A DNA stretch of 64,000 nucleotides from Paragordius varius (Eukaryota > Animalia > Nematomorpha), in assembly GCA_964247055.1 (NCBI GenBank), contig OZ176057.1, forward strand, positions 1,364,001 through 1,428,000, given 5' to 3'. The translations under genes were made by a program, and so were the position numbers. Of the stretch, positions 20,732-63,367 are shown piece after piece. Numbering within the stretch: the first letter of the stretch is position 1; every line of letters starts with the position of its first letter. Below the pieces are notes generated by a model, which saw only the letters and a list, made by a program, of their open reading frames with translations, was not told the origin of the DNA and ran no database searches.

Positions 20732-21106
20732 TTAAGTAAACAGAAAATAAAAAATAATAAAATAAATAAGTCCATATTAATTAAACTCCTAGTAATTTTC
20801 ACTAAAAATTTTGCAAGAATGAATTTAAAATCTTTTGTGGGAAACAAAGATTGATCGTCATTCTAGAAGATGTTTGGAATTGAAGTTAATACATCAATAC
20901 AACCTAATTTTTATTGTCAAAAAAATAATAATTTTAGGAACCAAGATTTAAAGTCCCATTTAAACAATCAGTTTGTGATCTTTTTATATTATATAAATTG
21001 AAATGTTTTCCAATACCTCTTGACAAAACTGTAATTTACAATATTGAAACTTTTTCTTTAAAAATAATTAATTTTTCGCTATTTTTGTTAAAAATGTAAT
21101 TAATTA

Positions 21107-21217
<111 letters not shown>

Positions 21218-21280
21218 TTAAACAAAAGTATGTAGAAAGGTACTTCATTGGCAAATAATAAAATTGGGTAATTAAGTTAC

Positions 21281-21356
21281 CTTTTGTGCCTTGGAGATCT
21301 TGATCTGTCTCTATGTCTATCTCTATCACGACTGCGAGACCTCTTTTTCTTTCGAT
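21281..21356 (-). CDS. U2AF2: U2AF65 exon 2 (RS domain)
   Basis: ttag|(N)RKKKRSRSRDRDRHRDRSRSPRHK|gtaact; 76 nt. Confidence 0.93.
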
Positions 21357-21421
21357 CTAATAAAAGTTTTCAAAATAATATGTTAATTTAAAATTTTAAT
21401 TAAAATAATTGAAAAATAAAC

Positions 21422-37634: not shown

Positions 37635-38086
37635 CTTTAAATTATAATATTTATCTTGAAACTACATTTTTTCACTTCATAAATAACGATGGAATCAAGA
37701 ATTATTAAGTAAAAAAAATATTATTTGCATAATTATTTTTTAAAATGTATTTCAAAAATTAATATAAAAACATATCTATTTTTTTGAGTTAGTTTAATTT
37801 TTAAATAAAATACTGGTCGTGGGTTCCTCTGTCACTGTTGGCTGAGCATTAGCTATAGAATAATATACTATAAATAAAATGTAAAAAGCAAATAAGTTTT
37901 TTTTAGAAAAAACAACCTTAATAACTATTTTTTTTCTATATAAATAGTTTTGGGTTACAATACGATGGAAATAGAGATGTTAATTAATAACACTTTAATT
38001 ACAGTATGCATTTTAATGTATGTTAAGTAATTTTATTGCCAGTCAAATAACATAAATGGTGCGTAAAATACTGACCTACAAAATTA

Positions 38087-39832
38087 CAGTAAATGTTAAT
38101 TTTTAATATCAAGAATTTTTTTTTTAATCCATGTGGCATTTTTTTATCCTTTTAAAAGTTGTTTTACAAGCATATAAAAAATAACGCTTACATATATATT
38201 TAAATGTACTTACATGTCCCTTTTCGGTACACATACATGAGAGATACATTAACATTGCAATATGTTCCCCTTCTCGCTACATTTATTATTTGAGAAATGG
38301 TAACATCGCATATGGGTTTTGCCTACTTTGATAAATATTTAGGTTTGATATAACATTTTTGATAAATATTTAGGTTTGATATAACATTTTTATAAAATTA
38401 GGTATTAATCAGTATGTTATGTGTTGAGCATACTTTGATTTTTAATTTTTAAGTTTATATATTTTTTTTATAAAAAATATTAAGTTTTTATTATTTTGTC
38501 AAAAAGAAATTTAGAATTAATGTATAGTTTTTGTGAAGAAGATAGTATAGATGAAAGTTTGCCATCAACATCAGATTCAAACTATGGGAACACATTAATA
38601 ACCCAGACTCCAGAGATCAAAAAAAGTATTTTTTTTATCCTTATTTTAGGGCAGTATTGGAGCAAAAGAAAGATGGAAAAAGCCATCTATCTTTTTCCAT
38701 TACACAATGAAAAACCAAGTCGATGGTTTTGTGATTTCTTAGATATGTCAGAATCAAGCATAAATAAATTGCGACAAAAGTTTATGCGAGGAGAGTCAAT
38801 GATCATCACTAAACAGGGCCGAAAGAAGAAATATGATAATTTAAAATTACAGAAAATTATAGCTGACATCATTAAAGATAATAATCAAATATATTTGGAG
38901 GAACTTTTAAAATGTATTCCGGAAAACTTCAGCGTTTCCAGATCCACACTTTGCAAATGTTTGAAACACATGAATATTACACACAAAAGAGGTTATTTTG
39001 AACCCATCAACCGTAACACGCCCCTAAATATAGACAAAAGATTTCAATATGCCCAGGATGTATTACAAAAAGATATGGATCTTTTTTTATGTGGATGAAT
39101 GTGGATTTAATGTAAAGCCCCCAGTTAAACCCAATTGAAAATTTTTTTGCTAAAATCAAAAAAAGACAGGAAAGATGCCATTTCAACAATGTGGAAGAAT
39201 TGATTGAAAACATAACTCAAATTCTTGAAAATATTCAGCACATTCATCTTTTTAAATATTATGAGCACACCAAAAAAATTGTCAAAAATATTTGCTTAAA
39301 TAAATTACCACTTGAACCAGATAATAATTATAAATAAATAAATGATATTATTTTACCATTTTTCGTGACATTTCTCAGTTTTAATTTTAGGTGATATTGT
39401 GTTTTCAAAAAAAGTCAGCAAAATCAAATTAATATTTAAATTTGTATAATACAAGTTTTATTACGCACATAAGCGATTTATATGTTATCAAATATATTTT
39501 TTTATAGTCTTTACTGATATTATTTAATTAATTATTAAAAACTTAATTTTTAAAATTACATATAAAACCTAAAAAATTATTTAATGAAGTAGGCAAAACC
39601 CATATGCGATGTTACCATTTTTCAAATAATAAATGTAGCGAGAAGAGGAACATATTGCAATGTTATAATATATATCTCTCATATATGTGTACCGAAAAGG
39701 GACATGTAAGTACATTTAAATATATATGTAAGTGTTATTTTTTATATGCTTGTAAAACAACTTTAGAAATGATAAAAAAATGCCACATGGATTAAAAAAA
39801 AAATTCTTGATATTAAAAATTAACATTTACTG
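38087..39832 (+). mobile_element. IS630/Tc1-like element with ~245-bp TIRs, internally deleted, nested in the palindrome arm
   Basis: TA|cagtaaatgtt ... aacatttactg|TA; transposase pieces QGRKKKY..VSRSTLCKCLKHMNITHKR, VDECGF, then directly PQLNPIENFF (catalytic middle deleted). Confidence 0.9.
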
Positions 39833-41520: not shown

Positions 41521-44478
41521 TTTAAATTAGGAAAATTATTTTTTTTGTTTTACATTGATAACTAATATATAAATAAGTTATATCTGAGCAAACATGTATA
41601 AACGCATGTTACCGTTTTATGTTTGACATTTTATTTTCCAAATCCAACGATGTAAATTTTAACAAAAGATTGAAAAAATGATCGATATATAAAACACTTT
41701 TAAAGTATTTGAATATGCCAAATATAAATAAATTTATTTAAATTATAAATGTATAATTAAACAAAATATTCATAATATTATGTTTAAAATTAGCATTCTT
41801 CTTATTGATATTAATACAGGTAATATGTTTCTAATATTGATATACGATGCGGTGTGCGTTCATAATGATCTTATCTTAGATTGAAGAATATGAGATGCAA
41901 AAAATAATTAAATGTAGATTGAAAATTCAATCACCATCATTTTCTTGGTAGATTCTATCAACTAAAATATAAGATAGAAAGGTATTTATTAATATATTAG
42001 AAAATTGATACCTGGATGCTAGAAGTATTTTCAATTTCAAATAGTGGGGGCTAAAACACTCAAAGTTTGAAAGGGAACAAAATAAGGTTGATTTGGCATT
42101 TTAACAATTAAATTTGAAAAAAATACTTTCTTCATGATTAAAAATTAAAAAATGTACTTTGTTTTTGGGTTTTCGTTCTACTATCCTAAACTATAAATAT
42201 GAAAAAGTATTCTTCACCAAAGCGAACAATGTTAGTGTTGCCTGCTTAGTTTTTGGAGTGCTGTTGCATTCAAAGCTTTTGAAAAAAAATATTTGTTTCT
42301 ATTTTCTGTTTGACGTCATTGGTGAAATCATATAAGCCTTTTCATATTTATAGTTTAGGATAGTAGAACGAAAACGCAAAATATAAAGTATATTTTTTTA
42401 TTTTTTATCATGAAGAAAGTATTTTTTTCAAATTTAATTGTTAAAAAGCCAAATCAACCTTATTTTGTTCCCTTTCAAACTTTGAGTGTTTTAGCCCCCA
42501 CTATTTAAAATTGAAAATACTTCTAGCATCCAAGTATCAATTTTCTAATATATTAATAAATCCCTTTCTATCTTATATTTTAGTTGATAGAATCTACCAA
42601 GAAAATGATGGTGATTGAATTTTCAATCTACATTTAATTATTTTTTGCATCTCATATTCTTCAATCTAAGATAAGATCATTATGAACGCACACCGCATCG
42701 TATATCAATATTAGAAACATATTACCTGTATTAATATCAATAAGAAGAATGCTAATTTTAAACATAATATTATGAATATTTTGTTTAATTATACATTTAT
42801 AATTTAAATAAATTTATTTATATTTGGCATATTCAATTAAAAGATGTTTTATATATCGATCATTTTTTCAATCTTTTGTATAATATACATCGTTGGATTT
42901 GGAAAATAAAATGTCAAACATAAAACGGTAACATGTGTTTTTACCTGTTTGCTTAGATATAACTTATTTATATATTAGTTATCAATGTAAAACAAAAAAA
43001 ATAATTTTCCTAAAAATTTAAAAACCGCAAATGATAGTAATTTTTACCTGTATATATCAATGTATCAAAAATATATAGTAATTAATAAATTAGCAGGGTT
43101 GAACAAAAAATTAAAAATTTTATTAATTTATTAAAAACCGCAATTTTCACCTTTTTTTCCCAAAATGTTTAGTAATTAATAACAAATAACAATGATACAA
43201 AATACGAATGTTAAATTTTTACTAAATTTATTAAAAACCGTAATTTTTACCTGTATATATTATAATGTCTAAAATATGTAGTAATTAATTACAATTAAAA
43301 ATGTTAAATAAAAAAACAAAAAAATTAAATTTTTACTAAATTTGTTAAAAACCGCAATTTTTATCTGTATTTATAATAATGTCCAAAATATGTAGTAATT
43401 AATTACAATAGCAATGCAAAACCTAAAAAAACAAAAAAAAACCAAATTTTTACTAAATTCGTTAAAAACCGCAATTTTTACCTGAATTTATTTAAATGTC
43501 CAAAATATGTAGTAATTAATTACAATAACAATGCAAAACCTAAAAAAAATCTAAATTTTTACTAATGTTAAACCGCAATTTTTACCTGTATTTATAATAA
43601 TGTGTAAAATATGTAGTAATTAATTACAATTCAATGCAAAACCTAAAAAACAAAAAAACAAAACTAAATTTTTACTAAATTTATTAATAACCTCAATTTT
43701 TACCTGTATTTTTTAAAATGTCCAAAATATGTAGTAATTGATTACAATTAACAATGTTACATAAAAAAAACAAAAATAATTAAATTTAACTAAATTTAAA
43801 AACCGAATATTTACCTGATTAAAATGTCTGAAATACTTAAAATCAATAAATAACAAAGCAAAACATAAAAGACAAAAATCTACTTAAATTACAAATATAT
43901 ATTTACCTGTGTTTTTTTAATTAGTAATAACAACTATATAAAAATATAGTACCAAGATTGATTAATACAGGTATTTAGCATGTTGAAAAATATTTATTAT
44001 TAAATTTAGCAATAATTAACATAAAATTTCTTAAAATACGTATTTTACTATTTATTAATTTATCAAAGATAAAAACCCGCAAAATTCCGCATCTAAATGC
44101 GTAACAACAATATTTCAAATGTTAACATAAATAATATACTCAAAATTTAACATTACAAAATATCCATCAAATTTAAAGCCTATGTTAAATCTCACGTCTA
44201 TCCTCTTTCATATGTGTACTACGAAATAGTTTTGTGGGTCAGTATTTTACGCATTTGATAAACCATTTATGTTATTTGACTGGCAATAAAATTACTTAAC
44301 ATACATTAAAATGCATACTGTATATATACACAAATATTATATATTAACAAAGTAAAAAAAATCCAGGTTTAAAGCGAGGAAGATGATCAACACACTTAGT
44401 TCGGTGTACAAATTGCTCAAAAAATGTTTAAAATTAAAAAATGTGGATTTATATCAAAATTTTACGATTTAATAAAGC

Positions 44479-44549
44479 TTAAAATAAATTAAAAAATACA
44501 AAAATTATCGATACAGCCCGCATAGAAAGTATGGTTGGTTGTTTAAAAC
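44479..44549 (-). CDS. Terminal exon of micro-exon mucin-like gene (hydrophobic C-terminal tail)
   Basis: aaaatag|GT TTT AAA...: (S)FKQPTILSMRAVSIIFVFFNLF*; phase 1 entry matches all upstream micro-exons. Confidence 0.75.
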
Positions 44550-44872
44550 CTATTTTTGGGTTAAAGTTTTTACATAGGACATTATAAATCTACTTTTACT
44601 CTGTTTTATAATGAAAATGTGGAACTAAAGATTACCACAAAATTTTTATTGGGTATATGCGTTTAAATTTGCTGTTGATGAAATTTTATTAAAATCAATC
44701 ATATAAATTTTTTAAATTGTATTTATAATATTTTTTTCTAAATCATGTGCCTAAAACGCTAAAGTATGAATATTTTTAAATTTGGCACAATATATTAATT
44801 GTTGTTTGAGTTTAAAATAGGTGCGCGCAGGGAATTTAGAATTTGATAAAATTAAATTTTCTCGAATTAAAC

Positions 44873-44911
44873 TTGTTGTAGATTTAAATGAAGTGTTTGA
44901 AGGGGTTGTAG
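44873..44911 (-). CDS. Micro-exon, 39 nt, (T)TTPSNTSFKSTT
   Basis: tatttag|CT...ACA A|gtttaa; phase 1-1. Confidence 0.85.
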
Positions 44912-45059
44912 CTAAATAATATTAAAAAACAGGATTAAAATAGTTTTATGGATTGCAATTATTATTAAAATTTAGTTTACAACTAAAAAAAATCCGGTAG
45001 GTAATTTTTAATACATTTTTTATATTGAAATAATAATAATTTTATTAAAAAAATATAAC

Positions 45060-45086
45060 TTGGAAGTTGAGTTGTCAAGGTGGCAT
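45060..45086 (-). CDS. Micro-exon, 27 nt, (N)ATLTTQLP
   Basis: attacag|AT...CCA A|gttata; phase 1-1. Confidence 0.82.
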
Positions 45087-46081
45087 CTGTAATAAAGTTT
45101 TTTTTAAAAAATCAATATATATAAATAATAATTTTTTAAACTCCAAATGTTTTTTTTCAGAATAATTATTAAATAAAGTTGTTTTTGTCGCTTTTTCTTG
45201 TTATCAGCGTATGATTAATTTATTTTGCTGTATATGCCAACACCATGACTAATGAAAACGGACAATGTATATTTTCTCACACTGCATTCCAAAATAAACT
45301 TCTTTTTATATTAATAAATTTTAGCATTATCATTTAATCCATTACAAGATTCTCAAAAGATAGGAAAAAAATATAAAATATATGAATATTCCCGGTATCT
45401 AGGCAAAAGCTTTATTGACCCATTTTTGATTAGCCGATGGGTAAGGCAAACTATGTTAAATATGCCAACCATATAAAAAACATATTATGGGTAGGACTTT
45501 TCACTTAGTTTAGAATATATATGATAGGGCAAAATTTGCCAATGTTTCAATTTGATTAATATAAACATGACATGTCTTTATTTGACTAAGTTATACCATT
45601 GGGGTAATGATGGTTTTAATTATATAGAAAAAAATAGTTGAGGGCTCCTTTCAAATAAACTGGGCAAGGGTCCCTGTAATAAATTACGCCACCATATAAA
45701 TTATGTATTAGCTTTAGAGCGAATTTTTGATGCTAGGAGATTAATTTTGACAACTCATTTTTGACTTGCTGAGCATCCAATTTTAAATACGTCAGCCCAT
45801 ACAATAAATTAAGATGAATTTAAAACAACCGTGAAAATATACGAGAAACCTTATAGATTCAATAAGGATTATGCAGTATTTCCCACTTTGAGAAAATGCA
45901 ATACATACATAAAGTATGATAAAGACAAAATTTTTAGTCAAAAGATAATCAGACCTTTTTAAAGTTTAACTATTTTATTTATAATTGTGCCAAAATTTAC
46001 ATCTCTATTTATACTTAAATAGTATGCTTGGATTTCGTTTAAAATATATTATGTTAAATATAATTTCCACAAATAAAAAAC

Positions 46082-46117
46082 TTGTAGATGGTTCATCTGT
46101 AGTTTGAGTGGTAGTAC
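46082..46117 (-). pseudogene. Micro-exon with mutated acceptor, 36 nt, (S)TTTQTTDEPST
   Basis: Same family and donor ACA A|gttttt, but the acceptor reads ttttat|GT instead of ttttag|GT. Confidence 0.65.
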
Positions 46118-46239
46118 ATAAAATTTGAGAAGTTATAAAACTTACAGTAAAAATTTAAAATAAGCCAAAATGTAAAAACAAACAAATTTTTTGAAAAAAC
46201 AACCATATTTTTTTAACCTTCAAAAATATGCTTTCTTAA

Positions 46240-46630
46240 GGCTTTTAGGCGCATTACAAATTTTTTTTAAAAAATATTGTATAAAAATACTCATCTCAAA
46301 CATTTTTGCCGCCATTTTTTTTCGCTAACAGACAAATAAATGTATATTATGCTTCAAAAGTGTAAATAATTTTTAAAAAGCTTGACTACATTTTACCAAC
46401 AAAAAAAGTTTTATTTTAATTATAATATCAGCTGTTAGTTTCATTCGTATTTTGTAACGTCCCCATTATAGCTAGAAGTCAAAAAACTGTAATAAAATAA
46501 TCTTTTTTCTTCAAATGAGAAAAGTTTTTGATAATTAAATTTTGAAAAAAATAACTATAAATAGTTTATGAAATTAAGCTCACGGATACAAAACTAACCC
46601 AAAAGTTAAACTAGAGTAAAAAAGTGAAAA
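46240..46630. repeat. Dispersed ~400-bp repeat family copy (probable MITE)
   Basis: Shares ggcgcatta(t)acaaatttt..gccgccat..cagctgtt..aaaactaccc..aaaagtgaaa with ~52520-52945, ~56320-56735 and an inverted copy at ~34745-35160; boundaries approximate. Confidence 0.55.
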
Positions 46631-47322
46631 GGTAATAAAGTAGTGACTATTTGTTTACAATTTTTGATTAATGTTACCAATTTAAATTTTCAATTTTGCA
46701 GCTCGTTATGTTTAAATAGGATTGAGAAACTTTGTTGTCTTTTCAATAATGTAAGTTAATGTGACCAGATCGGCTGTTTTTCGCAGTACAGTACTGAATT
46801 TTCAGAAAAAAAACTGCGACTGTACTGCGCCCACTTTTATACTGCTTTTTGAAATTAAAAAAATCAATTTTTATAAATATATATTAATTACCTTTTATTT
46901 ATTCAAAAAAATTATTTTAGAATTTGATATAGTATCCACTGTAAAATAACCTCATAATTTGTAAAGAAAATGTTCATTTTTCGGTAAAAAACTAAGATTG
47001 GCCTATTTTTAATCGGTTAATATTTATTTTCTGCTCGAATTTACATAAAATTGGATTTTGGATCGGTCAGTCTGCTTATGATCAGCCTTTCGCGCAGTGG
47101 CGAAACTATAAATTACGGGCTCCACAGTAAGATTCAGGTAATGGCTCTTTCACCCAGGGCTTTCAAAAGAGGTGCCTCAAAATTTAATTAAAAAATAAAA
47201 TAATGATATTTTAATAAATGTTTTAATAAGTTTAGAAAGTTCATTTTTTATTATAATTATCAAACGGAAAATTGTGTAGAAATTGTTATTCCTGTAACAT
47301 TTTATTTAAAATTTATTAAATA

Positions 47323-49104
47323 CTAGCGTAAATCTCGTGCTGCTACGCAGCCCGAGGAAGTCCTTCGGACTTCTGGGGGGGTGGGTTATTTGGAAAAAAG
47401 GGACAATAAAATGATCCACATATGTGGATTATTTCGAAACATTATTTAATAGCTATGATCTCATAGGAATTATACGGTGCATTCATACATTGATTGTTTA
47501 CTTGAGGGAAAAATAGATTTAAAAAAATATTTATACGTATGATAGAAAGTCCTTACTCAGCAGCTATCATCATAGAAACGCTTGACTAAAATTTTTGCCT
47601 TTTAACAGGGAATATGTAGAATCCTTAATGAATTTTTACGGTCTCATACCTAGGGCGAAAAATCGATTTAAAAAATTATTTTTGTGGACTTTGTTTTTTG
47701 AAAAAAATGGCATTTTACCGGGGGAGCGGGTAAAAAGAGGGCCTAAATCAAAAAAGTGACTCGACTATGTTCGACGCAATCGAAAATAAGTAAACAAAAA
47801 TTATATTTGAAATTGAATGGTCCAACACGTTCTCCGGAAAATTGTCTCAAAGACACGATTTTTGTGGACTTCTGTTTTCAAAAATAACCCGTTTTTCACA
47901 CGGGGTGGGCCCGAACTCGGGGCCTATTTGAAAAAAAGGGCGAAGCTATTGTCGGAGCATTCATTAATGATTATATTTTTTCGAAGTTTGGATTTGAATG
48001 GCTGTACCAGATCACAAAGCCAGCATTTTCCATTTTTATAACTATATAGATTACCATAAATAATGTATTAATATCCATATATCTTTTAACATGCTATACA
48101 TATGATAGATACTCCTTACTCAGCATCTATCATCAAAGAAACGCTTGACTAAAATTGTTGCCTTTTAACAGGCAATACGGTAAAACCTTCTCGAATTTTT
48201 AGAGTCTCATACCTTGGGTAAAAAAAATACAATGAAAAAATTATTTTTGTGGACGTTTTTTTTGAAAAAATGACATTTTACGGGGGTAGCGGGTAAAAAG
48301 AGGGCCTAAATCAAAAAAGTGAGTAGTCTAAGTTCAGCGCGATCAAAAATAAGTAAACAAAAATCATATATGAAATTGAATGGTCCAACACGTTCTCCAA
48401 AAAATTGACTCAACCCATTTTTCACACGGGGTGGGCCCGAACTGGGGACTTAATTCCAAAAAAGGGCGAAGCTATTGTCGGGGCATTCATTAATGATTAT
48501 ATTTTTTCGATGTTCGGATTTGATTGGGTTCACCGGTTTTCCGGAAACAGATCACAAAGTTACATGAAAAATCGGTTTTTAACGGGTAGCTCATTACCCA
48601 GCAGCTATCATCATAGAAACGCTTGACTAAAATTTTTGCCTTTTAACAGGGAATATGTAGAATCCTTAATGAATTTTTACGGTCTCATACCTAGGGCGAA
48701 AAATCGATTTAAAAAATTATTTTTGTGGACTTTGTTTTTTGAAAAAAATGGCATTTTACGGGGGGAGCGGGTAAAAAGAGGGCCTAAATCAAAAAAGTGA
48801 CTCGACTATGTTCGGCGCAATCGAAAATAAGTAAACAAAAATTATATTTGAAATTGAATGGTCCAACACGTTCTCCGGAAAATTGTCTCAAAGACACGAT
48901 TTTTGTGGACTTCTGTTATCAAAAAAAAACCGTTTTTCACACGGGGTGGGCCCGAACTGGGGGCCTATTTGAAAAAAGGGCGAAGCTATTGTCGGGGCAT
49001 TCATTAATGATTATATTTTTTCGAAGTTTGGATTTTAATGGGTCTACCGGCTTTCCTGTACCAGATCACAAAGCCAGCATTTTCCATTTTTATAAATATA
49101 TAGA
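47323..49104 (-). mobile_element. Non-autonomous Helitron with internal ~500-bp triplication
   Basis: Minus strand: A|TCTATATATTT 5' end at 49104; 3' end CTCGGGCTGC-GTA-GCAGCACGAG hairpin then CTAG|T at 47323; A-T insertion site. Repeated units at ~47550, ~48110 and ~48590. Confidence 0.82.
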
Positions 49105-50330
49105 TTAAATTATATTAAATTTCAATTAACAACAAATTCTATATAATTAACAATATTGTACAAGTAATTGAAATAAAATGGATAAAAAGCTTATTTTTTG
49201 AGTTACTATAGAGCCTTCTCAACACGTATTAAGATGTATGATTTTAATTTTGGATAGGGCCTTATTTAAAAATAGTGGTAATCTACTCTATATGGCTAAA
49301 CTTTACACACGAGGGAGGGCAAGTGTAAATGCAAAATGTTTTTGATATTAATCAGCCATGATGACATATGATTTCAAAATAACCCTTTTTTCCTATTAAA
49401 AAAATAAGAGTTTTTTACGTTTTCTACATTCATTAGGTGAAAGGAATTATATTTCTTAATACTTTTCCTAAACTTTAATTTTTATTAGTTTTTTTATTTT
49501 TAGCATAAACAAATTTGAGATATTTTGTTACTAAGGCTTTAAGATAAAACAAAACCATTTTTCTAAATTCGATGATTGTGAACTTTACTGAAGTTTCAGA
49601 ATTTTAATTTAAAGGTTGGTTGCAAATTTAGGTGAATTTTTATAAAAAACATAATTTTTATTTAATATAAATTTGAAAACGAACGAATTTAATCGAAATT
49701 CTAATAGAAAGGCTTATCGAATTATATATATAAAATGTTATGACATCTCAACCCATCATATCCATCATGCTCAAAATAGTATGAAATATGCTTCAACAAA
49801 AATTAGATTTTTGAAAGTATGCATTTTTTAATATATTTTGATATCAAAAATTAGCACATATTTAAAATTATTGCACAATGTCGGAATTTTTGCGTTTATT
49901 TTAAGAGATCAGTCCATTTTAAAAGAGCCAAAAAATTTGGGATTTTCAGAGCCCCATATAAAAATTTAAAATTTTTAAAAATATTGTTTTGCTTTTTATA
50001 TGTAGTTTATGTTATATTTTAGTGATATTTTTTAAAATAAAGCATTTAGCCTTCACCAAAAAAATGTTTGAAAAAATTGCGCACTTTTTGCAATTTTATA
50101 CGGAGCACCTACCACAAAAGTGTAAATAACTTTCTTTAATAATCGTAAAGGTTATAACCAAAAGCACCATAAAAATCCTGTTTTCTTATCAGAATATATA
50201 TGTGTTCATATAATAATTCATCATAATATCTTTTTGTAGAAACTGTAATATACCACACCGATGGTGTACAAACAATCAAAGTATGTTTTAATTCTGTACT
50301 GGTCAAGGTTCAAAATATCTGGTCACATTA

Positions 50331-52278
50331 CAGTCATGTCTATAGAATTGTCATAAATTTTTATTTAAATGATTATAATTTTTTTTTAATTGTTTTGATG
50401 TTTGATATGTCAACTTTCAACATGCGCATTTTTAAGCCTTAAAATAATAATAGCCTATTTAGTGTAAGAATTTTTAATTTATAATTAAAAGATGTTGCAA
50501 AATATTATTCTTGAACATTTTATCTACAACATGCGCATGTAATTTATGATAACCAAGTTTAATATATGTTTTCATTTTCTAGGCGTTTTTAACATGCACT
50601 TAAAATATATAAGAAAACCCAAGCAGATGTCCATTTAATCTCTATATATATAAAGAAATAAATCATAAATATAGAGTTATTTTAAAAAATTATGAATATC
50701 AACGATAACCCATTATTTCTTCTTTACTCGGCAGCTAGTATACTTGAAGGTTTATATTAAAAAATAAAAATTCAGAACGAAATCCAATATTAAAGGAAAA
50801 CATAGCTCCCTCAGTTTATACTTTTGAATCGGATACAAGTGAAGAGTCTTCAAGTATTTGAAAATAACAATTAGTAGTATCTGATTTGGATGTTCCATTG
50901 AATGAAAATGAATTATCTCGTGAAAAAATAAAACATAAAAGTATTAATATTTTTAAATTTTAGAACATTTGGAATAAGGAAAAAATAGATAGAGCTAAAA
51001 AATTATTTTTTGATCCAAAAAATTTGGAAAAACCCTCAAATTATTTTTTGGATTATTTTGATATTAACATCTATAAATATATAAAGAAGAAAAATAATTC
51101 TTGGAAATTTTACTGATAGAAATAAATCTGGTCGGCGTAACAAATTCAGAAATCCAGAAATAATAGATGCTGTCAAAACATTAGTAAACAATGATTGTGA
51201 ATTAACAATCGATGAAATAATGGAACAAATACCAGACCATATTAAAGTATGCAGAACAACTATTTACAAAATTCTCTCGGATTCAGAAATTACTCGAAAG
51301 AGGTGTATTTTACAACCTCGGGAACGAAACACCCCAGAGAATATAGAAAAGCGTTATAATTATGCCAGATTGGTGAAAGATATTCCACAGGAAAAAGTTT
51401 TTTTATTGATGAGTCAGGCTTCAGTTTGAAACTTACAAATATATGGGGTAGAGCTCCAAAGGGCAAATCTCCTATTGTAGAGGGATTTAACAAAGGTAAA
51501 ATTTGAATTTATTTTAGGAAAAAATGTTTCATTGATATGTATGATTGGTTGTCAGGGAGTTATTAATTACAGAACAAAAGAAGGCGCCTTTAGAGGCGAT
51601 GATTTTCGAATTTTTTTGACGGAATGTTTAACAAGAATTCCTGAAAGTTCAATAATAGTTTGCGATAATGCACCTATTCACAAAGCCGCGGTGTTAGGTG
51701 AGCTAAGGAATAAAATTGTTTATTTACCTCCTTATTCGCCGCAACTCAATCTCATTGAATGTTTTTTTCATGAGATTAAACATCAATATGATAAAAAACC
51801 CCGGTGTAGTACCCCTCTAGAGCAACATAATAAAATTGCAAGACTTTGCGAAGAGAGAAGGGAAAAAAATCTAAAAAATTATTATAATTTTTCTTCACAT
51901 ATTTTGTTGGAATGTATGCAAAGAAAACCCCTAGAAAATGAAAACAATTATAAATTTATTTAAATATTATAATCAATAAATATTTTTATCTTTTAAATTA
52001 TATTTTAGTTATGTGTGTTTAAACTTTATTAATAAAATTTTATAATTAATATTTTACAAAAGATAAAAATTACAATATGCGCATGTTGTGCATCAAGAAT
52101 AATATTTTGCAATATCTTTTAATTATAAATTAAAAATTCTTACAATAAATAGGCTACTATTATTTTAAGGCTTAAAAATGCGCATGTTGAAAGTTGACAT
52201 GTCAAACATCAAAACAATTAAAAAAAAATTATAATCATTTAAATACGAATTTCTGACAATTCTATATAGACATGACTG
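50331..52278 (+). mobile_element. IS630/Tc1-like element with ~195-bp TIRs
   Basis: TA|cagtcatgtcta ... tagacatgactg|TA; transposase motifs IDESGF, CDNAPIH and LPPYSPQLNLIECFF. Confidence 0.92.
50692..51963 (+). pseudogene. IS630/Tc1-like transposase with four putative 21-26-nt introns and frameshifts
   Basis: ATG at 50692; GT-AG segments 50750-50775, 50854-50874, 50941-50963 and 51496-51518 each carry an in-frame stop; extra frameshifts near 51080 and 51400. Confidence 0.75.
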
Positions 52279-52354
52279 TAATGTAAGTGATAATAATTTA
52301 ATTAAACAATTTAAACAAATAAAAAACTGTGGTATAAAATTTCATATAATAAAC

Positions 52355-52387
52355 TTGTAGGTTTCGCAGTTGATATTTGTGTTGTGA
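52355..52387 (-). CDS. Micro-exon, 33 nt, (I)TTQISTAKPT
   Basis: taattag|TC...ACA A|gtttat; phase 1-1. Confidence 0.85.
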
Positions 52388-53154
52388 CTAATTAAAAAGA
52401 ATTAAATTTTTTATGAATTATATAATTAAAATAACATAATGACACTTCCGTGACCTTTTTGAGTAATATTAGAGTTTAAATTTGAATATCTTGAAAATAA
52501 AGTATAGCCGATATATAATTTCTTTAGCCTTGGCGCATTATACAAATTTTTTATAAAAAATTGTGAAATTGTAAAAAATCCTTATTTCATTCGCCGCCAT
52601 GTTTTTCAAATAATTTTTTTAAATCGCTGCAACAGGCAAACAAATGTTAATCAAGGTTAGAAAATGTACAAAAAATATAAGAACTTTCAGTCTAAATTCT
52701 ACGAGCAAAAATTTGATATATTTTGATTATCAGCTGTTCATATGAATCGTGTTTTGCTGTCTTAATTTTAGACTCTAGAAGTCACTACAAAAATATAAGC
52801 GTTTTTATCTAATACATGAGAACAATGTTTGATAGTTATAATTTAACTATAATAACTTTCAAAAGAGTAAACTATTCACAAAATTGAGCTCTGGGATTAA
52901 AACTACCCCAATACGTCAACTAGGACAAAAAAGTGAAAAAATGAAGTGTGACAAAATATTTTTATATGGTATTATCACAAATATTTAGCTTATTTTTATC
53001 AAAGTTGAATTACCTAATAAAAAGCATCCCATAAAACTAAAAAGTTTTTAGCAATCGACACTACAAGGAGAGAAAATGATTTTTTGCTTGCTTAAAAACG
53101 CTATAAAGTCATTATATTTTAGTAAAATTATATTTTAATTTTTTAAATTTAAAC

Positions 53155-53196
53155 TTGTTGTGGACTGTTCTGTGGTTATTGTTGAATGAGTAGTGG
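53155..53196 (-). CDS. Micro-exon, 42 nt, (T)TTHSTITTEQSTT
   Basis: tatattag|CC...ACA A|gtttaa; phase 1-1. Confidence 0.87.
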
Positions 53197-53322
53197 CTAA
53201 TATAAAAATTGAAAAAAACAACGTACAAATAAATGTTATAAAAAATTATAAATTTAAAAATAAATTATTACATTTATCGAATATCATAAAGTTATATATT
53301 TCCGTATAAAATATAAAATAAC

Positions 53323-53340
53323 TTGTTGACCGTGATGCAG
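53323..53340 (-). CDS. Micro-exon, 18 nt, (T)ASRST
   Basis: attttag|CT...ACA A|gttatt; flank homologous to that of the 57396 exon. Confidence 0.7.
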
Positions 53341-53617
53341 CTAAAATAATTATTAAAAATATATTTTTTAATTTTGTCGGAATAATCGTTTTTATCTTGA
53401 TTTATTAAATTCTGAGGTTAAGTCTGTTTTAAATAAATGAAACGATATAATAGTTTATATAAAATAGCATTCATAACAACCCTGTAAACTATTTTTAATC
53501 CAAAAAATGATTTAAGAAGGTAAAAATGTGAAATAATAGACAAAAGGTTAAAAAATACAAATATTTTTTAGAAAAGACAGCCATTTTTCCAACCTTAAAT
53601 TTTCCCATATATATTAA

Positions 53618-54185
53618 CACTTCGATTGGGGTATCTAAATAGCCCAGACTAAATTTGAGTTAGGATTTTCAAAAAACTACTAAAGGAAACGGTCCCAATT
53701 TAAATTTATGCTTCTATCCTAATCAAAATTATATAAATATGCCAAAATATCTAAATAAAATTTTGTTTTGAAAAAAAAGTTCCATGTCAAACTACTTCGA
53801 CGCCATTTTTATTTTGCAAATTTTTTGCAAAATATCGTCTTCATTTAATTTTAAGGGTAAAATTAAAGCTTAACTCTTATTTAAATTACATTTAACATTG
53901 ATAAAAATAGAAAAAGCGGTTTATTTTGTATTATTTTTAATTTTACTATTGCACACATATCACGTTGACTAAATTTTTACATTTCGGTTTTAGCTTAAAA
54001 TAAGTAATATCAGGTATTTTTGAATAAATTTTTTATATATTTCCGTTAGTTTATATAAGTGCAAAGTTTTGCCAAGGTTTCGATTCCTTCCATATTTTTT
54101 AAAGAATTTAATTTTAAACACTCCTGGGGTATTTAACTACCCCAATTTGAATGAAGGACTAAAATGAATGTGTTGTATCTAAGTG
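53618..54185. mobile_element. piggyBac-like MITE in micro-exon gene intron
   Basis: TTAA at 53614-17 and 54186-89; homologous to 20151-20731. Confidence 0.8.
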
Positions 54186-55625
54186 TTAAATAACTCAAAA
54201 TGAGTTATAATTATTATGAAATAAAGAAAAAAAATATGCGTATATTTTTATATATTTGTCTTTTAGTGTTTTTTGTCTGATTAATTTTTATATATATTTA
54301 TTTTTTACAACTAGTTATCCTAAAATTCTCAAAAATATAATATAATTTATAAAGTTAAAATCGGTTTCGTTGTCCACAAAAAATATCCTTATTAAATTCC
54401 TGTATTCTGATAGAAAAATGTATCAGGATAATCGGTGCTTTTGATTATGGCCCTCACGAGTAATATGAGAAAAATATCCCTTTTATACAACTCTGCTCCA
54501 CAATAGAAATGGCAAAATTTGAACACATTTTGTTAACAATTTGTTTGAAAGCTAATTGCTTAATTTACAAATATATCACTAAATATATCATAAACTACAT
54601 ATGAAAAGCAACAATGTTTATAAATAATTTTTTCGATGCGCGAAAGTTTTAAAATCTTTAACTTCTTTTCAAATATTACTATTAAAATAAATCAAAAATG
54701 CAGAGGTTGCGTCAAAAAATTTATACATATGCTATTTTTTGATGTCACCTAAAAATAATTTACATACTTTTTTTTAAAATTATTTTTTAGCAAAATTTCA
54801 AGCCTACTTCATACTATTTTAAGCATGATAGAAACGGTATAAACACGTTTTAGGATATTACAAAATTACAGATTTTGATTATAATATCCTTTCATCTTTA
54901 TTTGTGTTTTTTAAAAAAGATTACCAAAATTCGAAGCAAAACCTTTAAATTAAAATTCCAAAGCGATATAAATGTTCGGCATCATCAAATTTAAAAAATG
55001 TTTTTTAGCACTAAAGCGTTTTATACTGTTTCCCTCATTGAAAAAGTATAAAGTAAGTTTCAACTGCTAAAATTAAATTTTTTAAAATATCATTTTTATA
55101 AAAATATTTTTATTTGATATCCAAATTTAGCTTATTATAAAATATATCGGGAATCGGCATCTAGCGTTTATTTTAAATAAATCAGCCCATTTTAGAAGAG
55201 TAATAAATTTGGGACATTCGGATTATGCTTTTTATAGTTGGTTTATATATCTTATAGTGATATTTTTTGAAATGAAGCATTTAGCTCACCATATGGAGCA
55301 GTTCTGCAAAATTGTTAATAACTTTCTTATATCACTAGTAAAGGCCAAAACTAAAAGTTCCATGATAATCCTGATACATTTTTCTATCATAACATATCCA
55401 TATTTTTTCAGAAATTTTTACCAGATTTGGCACGCAGCGTATATAAATTTTTCATAATTAGAAAGTATTTTGATATGGTATTGTCCATATTAAAATTTGG
55501 GTTTTATTAAAGTTTTTAATTTAATGAAATAAAGCTAAAAAGAATTTGAGTTTTCATTATGACAAGATAGATTATATAATTTTTAAATTGCTTTAAATTA
55601 TATATTATATTTTATAAATTAAAAC

Positions 55626-55667
55626 TTGATGTAGGCTCTTCTGTGGTTGTTGCCGATTGAGTAGTGG
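55626..55667 (-). CDS. Micro-exon, 42 nt, (T)TTQSATTTEEPTS
   Basis: ctattag|CC...TCA A|gtttta; phase 1-1. Confidence 0.87.
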
Positions 55668-57116
55668 CTAATAGTAATAAAAAAACAATAAATTATATAT
55701 TATATTTATTAAATTTCAAAAACCATTGAATTTTTACTATGTTTAATTTTATTAATAAATTGATACATATTTAATATCTTACAGACTTAATTAAAACCAG
55801 GTTTTATAAAGTAGTGAATTAGTATAGGAAAACAATTTTATAGGGTTAAATTGTATAAAACACCCTGTAGAAAATTTGTTTTTCGATTTTGTGAATGTTT
55901 TATTTAATTAGTTTGAAGACCCTACTTTTTAAACCTCGGATTCCATATATGTTTAAATACTTAATTAGTTTTAACAATATGGCATACTTAGTTCACCGAT
56001 TCAAATTAGGGTCATTGAGGACCCCAGGTTCTAAAATTATGGAACTAAAACAAACCTTTACAAAAATGTGCATATAATATCAGTGATGCACCGAAATGAT
56101 TTATTTAAAAAACTTGATATTACTTTTTTTATAAATAAATAAATATCTAGCCAACATGATAATGTATTAGCTAAATATGGAAATAACATAAAATAACCAT
56201 TTTTTTCTGTTTACAATAATATCTAATTTAACACCATTAGCTTTTGGGATAGTTTAATATTCTAGAGCCAATTATAAATTTGAATATTTTAAAAGATCAA
56301 GCCGAATTTAAATATATTTCTCTAGCCTTTTAGACACATTATATAAAAATCTTTTTTAGCAAATGTAAAATAAATCCTTATTTCGAACCCCGCCATTTTT
56401 TTCCTATAAATTTTTTTAATCGCTGACGCAACAGGAAAATAAATGTATGTTATGGTTGTTAATGCAAGTAATTAACTTTGATAAGCTCCAGGCTACTTTT
56501 TACCAGCAGTGATAGATTTTGATTTCAATATCAGTTGTTCATTTAAATCGTGTTTTGGAGCTGTTTCAATTATAGGCTTTATAAGTTAATTAAATGAAAA
56601 AATATATATACTTTTTATCCAATACATGAAAATTTGATAATTTAACTAAATTCAGTTAAAAAATGTAGTTTATTTACAAAATTGAGCTCTGTGATATAAA
56701 ACTACCCCAAAATGTAAGTAGGACAAAAGAGAGGAAATCAAAATTAACTTTAATTTTAACTTTAAATAAACACGGTAAAAAAATTTAAAATACAAATGGC
56801 ATCGAAGCATTTGGATATGAAGAGGCTTATTTATATAATTTTTGTTCTAATTGGACTTCAATAGTTTTCCAAATATGGTTTGGGGTTTTAAGATACTTAA
56901 TTTAAATCGAAGTGTTAACAAGGTTCATTTATCTTTTCATTTGCAACTCAAAATGATGAGTTATACATAAAATAAAATCAAGGGTAAATTATATCCGTGT
57001 ATTTTAATGTATTTGTCTTTTAGTTTTGTTATAATATAGAATTTCTATTATTTATTTTTAACGACAAACATATTGACAATTACTAATTTAATATACTTAT
57101 ATTATAATTTAAATAC

Positions 57117-57152
57117 TTGTAATCGGTTTCGTAGTTGCGGCTTGGGTTGTGT
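57117..57152 (-). CDS. Micro-exon, 36 nt, (N)TTQAATTKPIT
   Basis: aaattag|AC...ACA A|gtattt; phase 1-1. Confidence 0.87.
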
Positions 57153-57240
57153 CTAATTTAAAAATTTAGGTAAATAAAAATTATAAAATTTTATATATTA
57201 AAATATAATTAATTAGTAAATTTTTTTTATAAATAGTAAC

Positions 57241-57279
57241 TTGTTATGTCCTCTGTGGTTGTTGTCGACTGAGTAGTGA
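57241..57279 (-). CDS. Micro-exon, 39 nt, (I)TTQSTTTTEDIT
   Basis: tatattag|TC...ACA A|gttact; phase 1-1. Confidence 0.87.
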
Positions 57280-57395
57280 CTAATATATATAAAAAACCAT
57301 AGATATTCTAATACATATATTGAAAAAATAAAAATTAATTTGTTTAAATATCACACAGATATTTATATTTCTTCCGTATAATATATATTATAAAC

Positions 57396-57431
57396 TTGTC
57401 ATTGGCAAAATGGTTGTTGAATGAGACGGAG
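57396..57431 (-). CDS. Micro-exon, 36 nt, (T)PSHSTTILPMT
   Basis: cctttag|CT...ACA A|gtttat; phase 1-1. Confidence 0.85.
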
Positions 57432-58895
57432 CTAAAGGAAACATTTTTTTCAAGTTTAAATTGGAATTTCAAAATATAATATCAACGTTTCATCCTAATA
57501 AAAGCGATGAGGTTATTTTCAAGCATAATTTTAACTGAGTAAAATAAAAAAGTTTTATCCAATATATGGTCAAATGGTATTAAAAACAAAAAAACCTTAA
57601 AAAGTTTTTTTTCATAGTTCACACAAAAAATATCCTAATGATATTTTGATTGATAAAAGTATCAACATTCTCATTGGTGCTTGGGTGGGCCTTACGATTG
57701 ATATGACAAAAATATTTAAAATGTTCCATAAAATCGGAAAAATTCTCACATTATGCAAAATATTTTTTAGGTAAATCAAAACGCTTGATTCTCCAAACTA
57801 ACTTAAATAATATATAATTTCAGTTTGGGTGTAGAATCCGAAAGTATTGAATTTTTGGCCTCGTTATAATGTAACTTTTAATCATAAAAAGACTATTGTA
57901 CAATAACATTTAAATGAAGTAATACTCAAACCGCGGCCCAGGGGTCGTATGCAACCCTAAAAGTTCTTTTTTTGGCCCTGAAGTATTTATTTTGTGATTT
58001 AATGGTACAGCATTAAAATTCTATCGGTAATATAGCCCAGACAAGAAAAATATTTTTAAGCCATTTTAAAACTTTTGAGTAACACTCGTTAAATGCTAAA
58101 TTTTGACATTATCAAAAATTTAGAAAATCCAGCATTTGCTTCAAAATATAATTTTTAGCACTATTGATGAAATTTATTTTAGCTATTTTAATCATGATGG
58201 AAACAATATAAAGAGCTTTAATATAAAAAACATTTTTTAATATGAGATTTTGAACATTTTTAATATATTAAACTAACGAATTTTAAATATCAAAATTATG
58301 ATAGCAATGTTGAGTATTCACGAATTAATCAAGAAAAGTATTTATTACATCTTTTATATGCTGTTTTATCATTCATAAAAGCATAAATTCTTTAAAAAGT
58401 ATACATTTTTTTTCAAATATAATTTGTCTTGATATCACTATCTATAATTTATAAAAGTTTTTGTCTCCATTCGACTTATTCCCTTTATTAATTCCTCATT
58501 TTACATGAGCGAAAAAATTTGACATTTGCGGAACACACTCTCAAAAATTTTAAAAAATATTGTTGTGCTTAAATATATTTAATGCTATTTTAAAAACAAC
58601 TGATTTAGCTTTTATCAAAAAATATTTTATTTGGCAAAATGCGCACGAATTTCGCTTTTTTTCCTATGGTGCAATTACCGAAAAAATGGTAACTCGTGAG
58701 GCCCAAAATTAAGAGGACCACGAGGCTGATAATTCTGTCTATTAAAAAATATATATATATCATCAGGATATTATTTGATCCCCGATTTTGTACACAATGT
58801 TTATTTAATATCAATTTACAGTAATGATATAGAGACGAAACGCAATAACACAACAACAAATATATATCAAGAAAGATAAGCACCATACTTTAAAC

Positions 58896-59190
58896 CAGGG
58901 GTTTACAACACGGGGTCCTTTGGCACTTTGTGTGCGGCTCGCGAAAATCGGAAATCCTAAATTTGCGAAATATGTTCACAAAAATCTTAGTAAAATGGAT
59001 ATTTTTAAATAAATATTTCTTAATAGGCCTCTTCAATTGGCAAACAAATTGTTATATTTGTGGTAAATACTGGCAGTCTAATGTTTGAATTCCAATAAAT
59101 TATTTCTGAATGGCTATATGTATTTTAAATGTGGCCTGCCGATTTTTTTAGCTAAATATGCGGCTCCCTAAGTCATTTGGGGCTTCCCTG
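58896..59190. mobile_element. hAT-type MITE
   Basis: cagggg...ccctg ends with near-perfect 8-bp TSD ctttaaac/cttttaac. Confidence 0.6.
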
Positions 59191-59395
59191 CTTTTAACCT
59201 TGATATTGTCTATATATATTATCTGCATTTTTTTAAACTTGAGTGCGTTGTTGCCAATTTACTCTATTACTTTGACAACCCTTAAGGTTAAATATATATT
59301 TTACTTTTACGTTTTGTCTATGTATACCATTTTTTAATTATATAATTAATTTTTTAATTTTTTATTTTTTTCGAATAAATAAAATAAATTAAAAC

Positions 59396-59425
59396 TTGTG
59401 GGCTGTGTAGTGGTCAGCGTGGTAG
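59396..59425 (-). CDS. Micro-exon, 30 nt, (T)TTLTTTQPT
   Basis: aaattag|CT...ACA A|gtttta; phase 1-1. Confidence 0.85.
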
Positions 59426-60729
59426 CTAATTTAGAATAACATCAAATATATAATAATTATATTATTATAAAGACCACATTACATATAGGAGTAGTTTTAC
59501 ATCCCTGAGAGCTTCAAAATTCGAATAACTTAACAAAAACACCATTTATGTCTTTAAGAAACCTGCTGCCATATATGTTTATAAAAATGTAAAATTGCAT
59601 TTCTCCACCATTTATTATATGTTTAAATCTAAGGGGGGGGGGGGGGAGGGGCGAAAAATTTGTAGAATTTAATTAAAAAACAAAACTAGAAACAAATTTA
59701 ATTTCAAGGCCTATCAGATGTCATCGATATAAAAATTATTAAAAAATACAGATATATGGATCTCATTGATTGGGATATATATAATATTATAATATATTTT
59801 ACATTTTTATCGTGTATTTTTTGAGAAGCGCAAGAATTTTTATTTTCAATTTTGTGGGGGCTAAAACAAAAAAGGTTGGGAACCACTGTTAAAAGCTTTT
59901 AAACGATTTAGTAGTTGGGAATGCATTTTCATTTTAGCAAAATTTAGTATATAAAATTATTTTTAAACGCAAACAATACATGAAAAATATTTCTTTAATT
60001 TAAAACTACATATATAATAATGTCCTGAATTTTGAGTCAAAATATGGTTTAGATTTTATTTAGTTAAAAACAACACGGAAAAAATTAAAAATTTGAATTG
60101 ACCCGTGTAGATTTATAAATGATTATTTAATCAAATATAATAAATTTATATGATAATTTAAATTGTGTTAAAAACGAATTTAATTCGAATATAATAACCG
60201 GATGATTTACAATTTTTCAGCTAATTAATAATTTTAAGTGTCAAAGCAAATCAATATATATATATATATATTATAGATGTAAATTTAAATAGTACAATTT
60301 AGGTAAACATAAAAAAAATTAAAATTTAATAAAAATTATATAGGGCAGTTTATATCGAAATTTGAGAGTTTTTGTAATTTATGTTTTGTAATAATTTTTT
60401 TATAGCTCCGAAGATTAAACTAAATTTTAAAGCCTTTCAGTCAATTTAGTGAATATACTCCACCTAAATTCAGCTGTAATAAAGAGTTGACATTTAAAAA
60501 AACATTTCAGATTAATACTTTCCCGTTTTTTTATAAGTCAGGCAGTTTTATTTTTAAAATAACTTTTCCAAAATGCATAACGAATTCGGCCCAATATATT
60601 AATGAGATCGCTTTTAAAAATACACGAATGTAACGTATGAGGTATTTTTATTAATTTTATAAAAGCGAATCGTATATCAATATTAAATTGTTAGATTGCT
60701 TTAAATATTTATAAATTATATTTTTTTAC

Positions 60730-60768
60730 TTGTTGTAGGCAGCTCTGTACTTGTTGATTGGGCGGTTG
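60730..60768 (-). CDS. Micro-exon, 39 nt, (T)TAQSTSTELPTT
   Basis: aaattag|CA...ACA A|gtaaaa; phase 1-1. Confidence 0.87.
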
Positions 60769-61094
60769 CTAATTTTTATTAAATATACAGCATATTAAAA
60801 AAACCTTTTAACCAAAATTTTTTATTTAAAATTTATAATCAAAAAGTTATAAATTTGTAATATAATTTTTTATTAGCAAAATAGATGTTGAGTTTTCGCA
60901 TTTTTGGATAAAAAGACAGTTTTAATTTTCATATTATCAAATTTTATAGAGAATATAATTTTATAGTATGGTTGGTTTTTTTTCCGATTTTATACTCTCT
61001 ATTAAATGTTTTTAGTTTATATTTTAAAAGTTTATATTATTGATGAATAGTTGTATCTTAAAATAAAAATTTTGGGATTTCTAAAAATTAAAAC

Positions 61095-61136
61095 TTATGG
61101 TAGGTGCTACTGTAGTTGTTGTAGGGGTGGTGGTAC
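61095..61136 (-). CDS. Micro-exon, 42 nt, (S)TTTPTTTTVAPTI
   Basis: tgattag|GT...ATA A|gtttta; phase 1-1. Confidence 0.87.
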
Positions 61137-61275
61137 CTAATCAAAATATATATAATTTTGGAATTTACATTTAATATGAAAATAAAAATACTCGCTAAAC
61201 ATCTGGAAACCACCAATTTCCAAATAGAAATTTAATAATTTAAGTATTGTTCATTAATTTCTTCAAATTAAAAAC

Positions 61276-61311
61276 TTGTAATCGGTTGCGTAGTTGTCGA
61301 GAGCGTTGGAG
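61276..61311 (-). CDS. Micro-exon, 36 nt, (T)PTLSTTTQPIT
   Basis: aaaatag|CT...ACA A|gttttt; phase 1-1. Confidence 0.85.
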
Positions 61312-62223
61312 CTATTTTTAAAAAAAGGAATAAAATAAATATTTTTTAAACTTTATTTATATAGATTTGTCATGGTGTATCAATATTGTATTTAAGTTAG
61401 AATGGATAATGGGATTTTATAATTAGAAAATTAGGTGTCCACCATATGAGAGAAATGAATGCAAAAATAACACATAAAAACAGCCGGTTTATTTGTCTAT
61501 TTTCAACAAAAATGCAAACGCTCAAAATATTTATTTCATATTGGTTTATTTTACAAAACTGGAGATGGCATCAATTATTATTTTTTATAAAACAGTTTTA
61601 TGGTAACTGTAAAAATCACCTCTAAAGATTCTGACAAGGTTTTTAATATTACTTTATAGAAAACAATATTATATAATTTGACATTTGTAATCAAATTTAA
61701 TTCAAAAGTTATTTATAGTTTTTTAAGGTATAAAGACATGGCTAACCTTATAGATATTTACCACAGTTTAAATAAACGTAATTAATAACCATTAATCAAA
61801 AATAACCATACTTTTAATTTTTATATTTTATGAATGTGGTCGTTTATATTTGCACCGAAGTACCATGTTTTAAATTGACATTTTTAGCAATTTAAACTAT
61901 ATTGGCAAATGTTATCCACAAGGGCTTTATTAACAACTTATAAAATTCGATTTTAAAACATTTTATGATTACTTAATTTTTAATGCATTTAATAATGTTT
62001 TGAAAAATAAGTTTTTATCATTTCTTTGTGTCACTGAGAAAATATATAACTTTTAAATCAATTTTGAGGTCACAAAAATTCATAAATTAATTTTAATATT
62101 TAAATAAAATCACCTTTAATAATACACCAAAACACATCTCATAATCAATTTTAATAAACTTTAATTAATTATTAAAATGTCTCTAATAAATAATAATCAT
62201 TTTTATGCATATTATGTTTAAAC

Positions 62224-62262
62224 TTGTTGTAAGCTCGTCTGTGGTAGTTGATTGCGTGATAA
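62224..62262 (-). CDS. Micro-exon, 39 nt, (I)ITQSTTTDELTT
   Basis: tatattag|TT...ACA A|gtttaa; phase 1-1. Confidence 0.87.
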
Positions 62263-63328
62263 CTAATATATAAAAATTTTTAATTTGTTGAAACTCTACC
62301 CATTATAATTTAAAAAATTTTGTATTCCTTAAATAAAATTTTAAAATTGTTTTTGCGAGGACAATAACCAATAATAGAATTTATGGGGCCGTTTTGCTAC
62401 ATTTTTCAAAATATCCATTAATTTCAACACCTCGATTCAAATTTGGGTATCTAAAGTCTCCCCAGATCATGAAATCGATATTAATTAAAAACCACCCAAT
62501 AGAATGGTCCTAAATTAAATTTATGTGTGTATCTTAAAGTACAATTTAATTTATATTTAAATAAAATTCAGTGTTTTTTTACAAAACTTATCAACCTACT
62601 TCGACGCCATTCATAACAATTTTGCAAAATATCGTGTTTATTTGACTCTAACGCTAATAAGGTTTATTTTTTATTCAAATCACATCTAAGATTGATATAA
62701 ACAAAAAAGGTGGTTTATAATGCATTATTTATATTTAGCTAATACACACATGTACTGACTATATTTTAAACTTGAATTGCATCCATAAAATAAGTAATAT
62801 CAACTCAAAATAATAATAATGGCAAAAATATTTGAAAAAATTGATGACTTTCTTAATTACGATGGATGATGTTTTATTCTACAAAATGGATAGGGAAACC
62901 TATTTCTTAGGAATTTGTGATACTTTTCCGAAAAAATAACTCGAATATTTAGGAATTATTATCGTAACTTCTATACATAAGAAAAAAGGTTTCCCTTAAG
63001 TTTTAGAAAAGTCTATTATTTTATGAAATCGATCAAAAAAGATGGAATCAGGAAATATATTATTTAAAAAATATGTGTTTGGTGGCGGAACCCAATTATT
63101 TTAATTTTAAACCTTATTAATTTGGTAAAAGAGTTATTTTCAATACTCTTTCAATATACTTAAAATTTAATAAAATTTGATTAAGGCGTGTATGGAATAA
63201 AAAAAGTTGTCTAAAATTAAATGATCAAAACTATCGTTAAAGTAAAGTTTGGGAAAATATTGTCAAATTTTAACCATTTGTTGATTTTTACGCTACTGTA
63301 TTATGAGAATTATTAATTTTTCATTAAC

Positions 63329-63367
63329 TTGTAGTTGATTCCTCGGAAGTTATCAATTGCTTGGTAG
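63329..63367 (-). CDS. Micro-exon, 39 nt, TKQLITSEESTT (most 5' one in the window)
   Basis: tatatag|CT...ACA A|gttaat; phase 1-1; the gene continues beyond base 64000. Confidence 0.82.

Follow-up and report, generated by a model that had tools for sequence, protein, structure and literature searches.

What is encoded by the short, Thr-rich islands scattered over the minus strand of a 64,000-nt stretch of the Paragordius varius genome (Nematomorpha; assembly GCA_964247055.1, contig OZ176057.1, positions 1,364,001 to 1,428,000 of the forward strand; hereafter the window)? The question was raised by an earlier inspection of the DNA, here called the sequence-only reading, which proposed a hidden gene of symmetric phase-1 micro-exons, coding for a mucin-like stalk that would end in a glycosylphosphatidylinositol (GPI) anchor and whose exons might be mixed by splicing. 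The window is animal DNA of ~25% GC, from an AT-rich genome. Our analysis makes it reasonably probable that these islands are true exons, belonging to a secreted mucin-like gene, and that this gene continues past position 44479, the claimed terminus, to antistasin-like exons; that the exons are joined and expressed today is what we infer.

The minus strand was scanned mechanically for AG-(3n)-GT islands with an open phase 1 and a high content of Ser, Thr and Pro. This independent scan returned exactly the 15 exons of the sequence-only reading, located between 44873 and 63367 and 18-42 nt in length. All 15 are stop-free in phase 1-1, are flanked by AG and GT and have A as their terminal base. 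Joined, they encode 179 aa with 83 Thr and 20 Ser; a Thr at the first, split codon would bring Thr to the 84 first reported. Between 44401 and 63500, 13 phase-1 islands with at least 35% Thr were found on the minus strand vs none on the plus strand, and 200 dinucleotide-preserving shuffles of this interval gave a mean of 0.48 and a maximum of 4. The island pattern is far beyond chance. Furthermore, the GC content of the stalk exons is 33-57%, vs ~25% in the introns.

Most of these exons belong to two alternating paralogous types, each exon carrying one peptide repeat: type A, of ~39-42 nt, is TTQSTTTTEEPTT-like, and type B, of ~30-36 nt, is TTQxxTTKPIT-like. Read along the minus strand, the array opens with two type-A exons of 39 nt at 63329-63367 (phase 1-1, TKQLITSEESTT) and 62224-62262 (ITQSTTTDELTT), followed by a type-B exon of 36 nt at 61276-61311 (PTLSTTTQPIT), a 42-nt exon at 61095-61136 (TTTPTTTTVAPTI) and a type-A exon of 39 nt at 60730-60768, in which an internal GT at 60750 might give an 18-nt variant. 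It continues with type-B exons at 59396-59425 (30 nt) and 57396-57431 (36 nt), a type-A exon at 57241-57279 (39 nt), a type-B exon at 57117-57152 (36 nt) and a type-A exon at 55626-55667 (42 nt). An 18-nt exon at 53323-53340 is followed by a type-A exon of 42 nt at 53155-53196 and a type-B exon of 33 nt at 52355-52387, and the last two exons of the 15 lie at 45060-45086 (27 nt) and 44873-44911 (39 nt). In the intron at 59620-59650 (minus strand) there is a run of ~14 C with CCCCT before it. Three further phase 1-1 micro-exons, absent from the sequence-only reading, were recognised on the same strand, downstream of the claimed terminus: a type-A exon of 39 nt at 37814-37852 (NAQPTVTEEPTT) and two Thr-rich exons at 33960-33992 (33 nt) and 33666-33701 (36 nt). 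At least 18 consecutive micro-exons are thus predicted from the sequence, and their lengths fall into seven classes (18, 27, 30, 33, 36, 39 and 42 nt), all multiples of 3. A 19th stalk exon, missed by the sequence-only reading, is a degenerate type-A copy at 46082-46117 (36 nt in frame), with AT in place of the acceptor AG; from an internal AG, an in-frame exon of 15 nt (46082-46096) might still be spliced.

The paralogous exons were compared with one another by BLAST, using each exon with 150-nt flanks. Similarity ended within ~6 nt on the upstream side of the exon and within 8-30 nt on its downstream side, and the introns could not be aligned, which indicates that the duplications are old and that the exons alone were kept. 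Identity among paralogous exons was 60-85%. Third codon positions differed in 58% of paralogue comparisons for type A and 67% for type B, and the differences at codon positions 1, 2 and 3 numbered 129, 112 and 192 for type A and 230, 154 and 294 for type B. All four ACN codons are used for Thr (43/19/18/6), and the exons show codon periodicity, with 54% A at position 1, 68% C at position 2 and a mixed position 3. Paralogues differed in length by multiples of three in every case. Both AG and GT are kept in 18 of 18 exons, so that all 72 splice-dinucleotide bases are intact. Together, the third-position differences, the invariant AG and GT, the 3n lengths and the exon-limited similarity indicate that the islands are constrained coding exons, made by old tandem duplication. 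The hidden gene of symmetric phase-1 micro-exons that had been proposed, with its Thr-rich mucin-like stalk, therefore gains support from exon anatomy, conservation, frame and the excess over shuffled DNA.

The splice signals of these exons were compared with those of the U2AF large-subunit gene at 15200-21400 (minus strand), which has canonical introns with GTAAGT/GTGAGT donors and served as the reference within the window. The stalk acceptors are T-rich, read TAG in 17 of 18 exons and resemble those of the U2AF gene. The stalk exons end in ACAA, the GT that follows is itself followed by T in 13 of 18 cases, and G at position +5 was found in 1 of 18 only; the U2AF donors in the window (n=5) read GTAACT, GTAAGT, GTGAGT, GTAAGC and GTATTT. 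Because the stalk donor would have been inherited from a single ancestral unit, its motif counts as one evolutionary event rather than many independent ones.

Downstream of the stalk exons, three Cys-rich, antistasin-like exons, likewise absent from the sequence-only reading, were found on the minus strand. The first (exon i, 72 nt, 30553-30624) is in phase 1-1 and has a TGA at 30620-30622, in the exact place of the first Cys codon of the other two; it gave no match to the antistasin profile (Pfam PF02822). The second (exon ii, 30235-30313) is 79 nt long (3n+1); a shift of one base near 30261-30268 brings a TAG into frame at 30258-30260. The second half of exon ii matches the C-terminal half of the PF02822 profile at 16.2 bits, below the cut-off. 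The third (exon iii, 29857-29942) has a phase-1 acceptor, a stop codon at 29857-29859 and an AATAAA ~65 nt downstream, and matches PF02822 with 22.4 bits (gathering cut-off 21.2; E 1.8e-4). Junctions are in phase 1 throughout and interrupt the last Cys codon of every module after its T (T|GT or T|GC), an architecture that the antistasin-like exons share with the stalk. Between 44.4 and 30.7 kb, no start exon was found that both resembles a signal peptide and has a phase-1 donor. An ATG at 30701 (MVKNICVLIFT...) might open a small antistasin gene of its own, but this reading was rejected, since its sole phase-1 donor joins into a stop. A 36-nt AG...GT island at 30120-30155 (minus strand), between exons ii and iii, would form a T|AA stop at its junction with exon ii and may be a chance occurrence. 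A ~21-22-nt unit (caa[ac]c[ag]caacatttttt-like) is repeated in tandem approximately 12 times at 28890-29150 on the minus strand, beginning ~700 nt downstream of the last antistasin exon.

From these results we propose a gene whose start would lie beyond position 64000 and whose stalk, Thr-rich and presumably heavily O-glycosylated, would have been assembled by repeated tandem duplication of the two alternating exon types; secretion, like O-glycosylation, is predicted rather than observed. Every unit would keep TAG|...ACAA|GT, and hence all exons would be in phase 1-1. Most likely, the gene runs on through the exons at 37814, 33960 and 33666 to the three antistasin-like exons and ends at 29857. 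Its 3' part may be decaying, in that a stop or frame shift interrupts two of the three tail exons and the acceptor of one stalk exon has been lost.

Several observations count against an intact, expressed gene of this form. The TGA in exon i, the frame shift in exon ii and the acceptor lost at 46117/46118 suggest decay, whether of the 3' part or of the entire copy. The link between the array at 44-63 kb and the exons at 29.8-37.9 kb is drawn from strand, phase and exon type alone, and the U2AF gene, with its GTAAGT/GTGAGT donors, has far stronger 5' splice sites than the stalk exons. In a search of sequencing runs, the region was present only in DNA runs among those listed, and the fraction of 87 sampled words from 43800-44620, a putative 3' end, that was present in listed RNA runs of the same species label was 0.00; the word index is blind to exons of 42 nt or less, which makes the RNA-run result uninformative for the micro-exons. 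A 50-aa segment joined from four exons gave no match in a search for homologous proteins, and the last antistasin exon (30 aa), compared with protein representatives, matched only unrelated bacterial Cys-repeat proteins. These protein searches carry little weight, because a netrin-like open reading frame (ORF) that is also present in the window was likewise unmatched as a positive control, and the libraries probably do not contain the organism.

An alternative is that the locus was inactivated recently, as one copy in a tandem cluster of micro-exon mucin genes; its exons would still look intact because Thr codons resist nonsense mutation and little time has elapsed. In addition to the two tail lesions, the AT acceptor of 46082-46117, the lack of RNA-run words at the putative 3' end and the lack of protein matches, this explanation is favored by introns of 6-7 kb that carry transposons. 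However, acceptor and donor are both retained in 18 of 19 stalk exons, and no length departs from a multiple of 3. The tail indel rate, one per ~230 nt, would predict ~3 frame-breaking indels in ~650 nt of stalk exons, and none was seen in the 18 exons, which counts against wholesale decay. Moreover, the two tail lesions could be assembly errors. We regard an inactivated copy as possible but somewhat unlikely, and prefer the mucin-like gene proposed above.

A different issue is how such a gene would be used. The sequence-only reading suggested that combinatorial skipping of symmetric exons varies stalk length and glycan load, in the manner of the schistosome micro-exon genes (MEGs). This suggestion concerns exon usage only and is compatible with the gene that we propose. 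Any pair of exons can be joined without creating a stop, as all are in phase 1-1 and end in A, and the donors are uniformly weak, as is common in skipped exons. Weak donors on A/C-rich micro-exons would fit exon definition by exonic enhancers, and such donors would permit skipping. Type-A exons (e.g., at 62239, 55641, 53170 and 37829 on the minus strand) also contain a conserved internal ACAG, 15 nt before the donor and derived from Thr-Glu codons; it is a potential in-frame alternative acceptor that could yield 15-nt exons. Flatworm MEGs do diversify their products in this way (PMC7653826, PMC4015677). On the other hand, tandem duplication of a single ...ACAA|GT unit would produce the phase symmetry and the terminal A; these features require no selection for mixing and are not in themselves evidence of it. 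In other tandem-exon genes with symmetric exons, splicing is largely constitutive. The figure of up to 2^15 isoforms is a possibility that the anatomy allows without indicating it, and we consider regulated diversification at this locus doubtful.

Less probable still is a surface mucin with a GPI anchor and, as claimed, its last exon at 44479-44549 (minus strand; SFKQPTILSMRAVSIIFVFFNLF*). The phase-1 ORF reported there was found; it lies 323 nt past the last stalk exon, its first half is GC-richer, and it ends in AVSIIFVFFNLF*, 12 mostly hydrophobic residues. Nevertheless, the 7 kb beyond the last stalk exon contain 68 AG sites from which phase 1 stays open for at least 12 codons, and at 7 of these 68 the reading frame closes with a tail in which at least 10 of 12 residues are hydrophobic. 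Such endings are frequent by chance, since T-rich DNA encodes Phe, Ile and Leu. GPI signals have small residues at omega and omega+2, a polar spacer and a hydrophobic tail of ~15-20 aa. By inspection, the AVSIIFVFFNLF tail is short for such a signal and includes an Asn, and the candidate omega Ser is followed by Met-Arg instead of small residues. The zero in the listed RNA runs is weakly negative for a terminal exon here, and exons of the same type lie downstream; both findings speak, if weakly, against 44479-44549 as the true mRNA 3' end. A further downstream exon had been named in the sequence-only reading itself as sufficient to refute the anchor; phase-1 paralogous exons and the antistasin-like tail were found downstream on the same strand, and would refute it on those terms if their predicted joining holds. 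The GPI anchor is probably a chance reading.

Finally, the proposal that there is no gene here, only chance islands or a dispersed non-coding repeat, could appeal to the unusual donors but is close to refuted by the strand-specific excess over shuffles, the codon periodicity, the third-position variation, the 3n-only indels and the invariant AG and GT.

The surroundings of the array contain several mobile and repeated sequences, and the long introns of the mucin gene appear to be due to transposon insertions. A Tc1/mariner-type DDE_3 transposase remnant (51532-51960, plus strand; Pfam 57.6 bits) lies within the 6.2-kb intron between the exons at 52355 and 46117, and an ORF with a weak HTH_Tnp_IS630-type transposase match (38496-39095, plus strand; 19.4 bits, below the cut-off) lies in the 7-kb gap between the exons at 44873 and 37852. 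A PIF/Harbinger-type DDE_Tnp_4 transposase ORF was found at 23401-24198 (plus strand; 78 bits). An exon candidate at 50869-50916 was rejected, being inside a Tc1-like transposon and having T as its terminal base. Also rejected were GC-rich 24-nt candidates at 47.7-49.0 kb, which are part of a GC-richer repeat of roughly 500 bp with three copies at 47550-49126 (82-99% identity), the source of false micro-exon candidates such as 47900-47923 and 48941-48964. The U2AF intron at 18.1-19.7 kb contains repeated copies of the exon start AGQIPLNILPT. Rfam and tRNA scans of the window gave no matches.

Previous studies of flatworms (Schistosoma, Echinococcus, Hymenolepis) described MEGs with many exons of <70 nt that are divisible by three and introns of 0.1-5 kb; their secreted products are easily missed by gene finders, and exon symmetry allows in-frame skipping (PMC7653826, PMC4015677, bioRxiv 10.1101/2023.06.21.545858). 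At this locus, all 15 exons first reported and all three further exons are <70 nt (18-42 nt) and divisible by three and are predicted to form one consecutive run, which places the gene within the structural definition of PMC7653826 and bears out the resemblance to schistosome MEGs that had been proposed. However, the micro-exons here are paralogous Thr-rich repeats of a predicted mucin stalk, whereas those of MEGs encode unrelated short segments, and the antistasin-like tail is a further difference; in another phylum, a sequence relationship is not expected. A literature search found no paper that links micro-exon genes with Nematomorpha in substance, the two terms occurring together only in a flatworm-phylogeny paper.

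By analogy, the gene is closest in logic to the Schistosoma mansoni polymorphic mucins (SmPoMuc), which have one repeat per 27-bp exon, in up to ~20 copies, arranged in tandem genomic units (PMC2576457). Their genes are clustered, with pseudogene copies included, and have ~1-kb repeat units that are >94% identical, introns included (PMC2576457). The organization of one Ser/Thr-rich repeat per micro-exon in tandem units is seen here in the alternating types A and B. In contrast to SmPoMuc, the present gene has two alternating exon types and a different C-terminal domain, and homogenisation to >94% was not observed; the array is old and not homogenised, given that its introns are unalignable and its exons 60-85% alike. 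The tail resembles the antistasin family (PF02822) through exon iii, whose score exceeds the gathering threshold, and through exon ii, which matches the profile over its C-terminal half. It differs from that family in that its modules are phase-1 exons with a split last Cys codon, their attachment to a mucin stalk is a prediction, and two of the three are disrupted.

Taken at its broadest, the locus could mean that micro-exon mucin genes arose independently, as a cluster, in an animal lineage outside the flatworms. Exonic enhancers would define their A/C-rich exons (18-42 nt, with uniformly weak GTT donors), and regulated, combinatorial skipping of these exons would set the length and O-glycan load of the stalk in a secreted mucin that bears antistasin-like protease-inhibitor modules. 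We offer this as speculation that is more likely to be wrong than right by a wide measure. If the gene is expressed, a micro-exon design with one repeat per exon, so far described for flatworm MEGs and SmPoMuc, would have arisen independently in another parasite lineage and would here be fused to antistasin-like modules. It would represent a gene class overlooked by ordinary gene finders and RNA aligners, and its non-canonical ACAA|GTT donors, beside the canonical donors of a housekeeping gene, would make it a useful natural test case for the recognition of very short exons.

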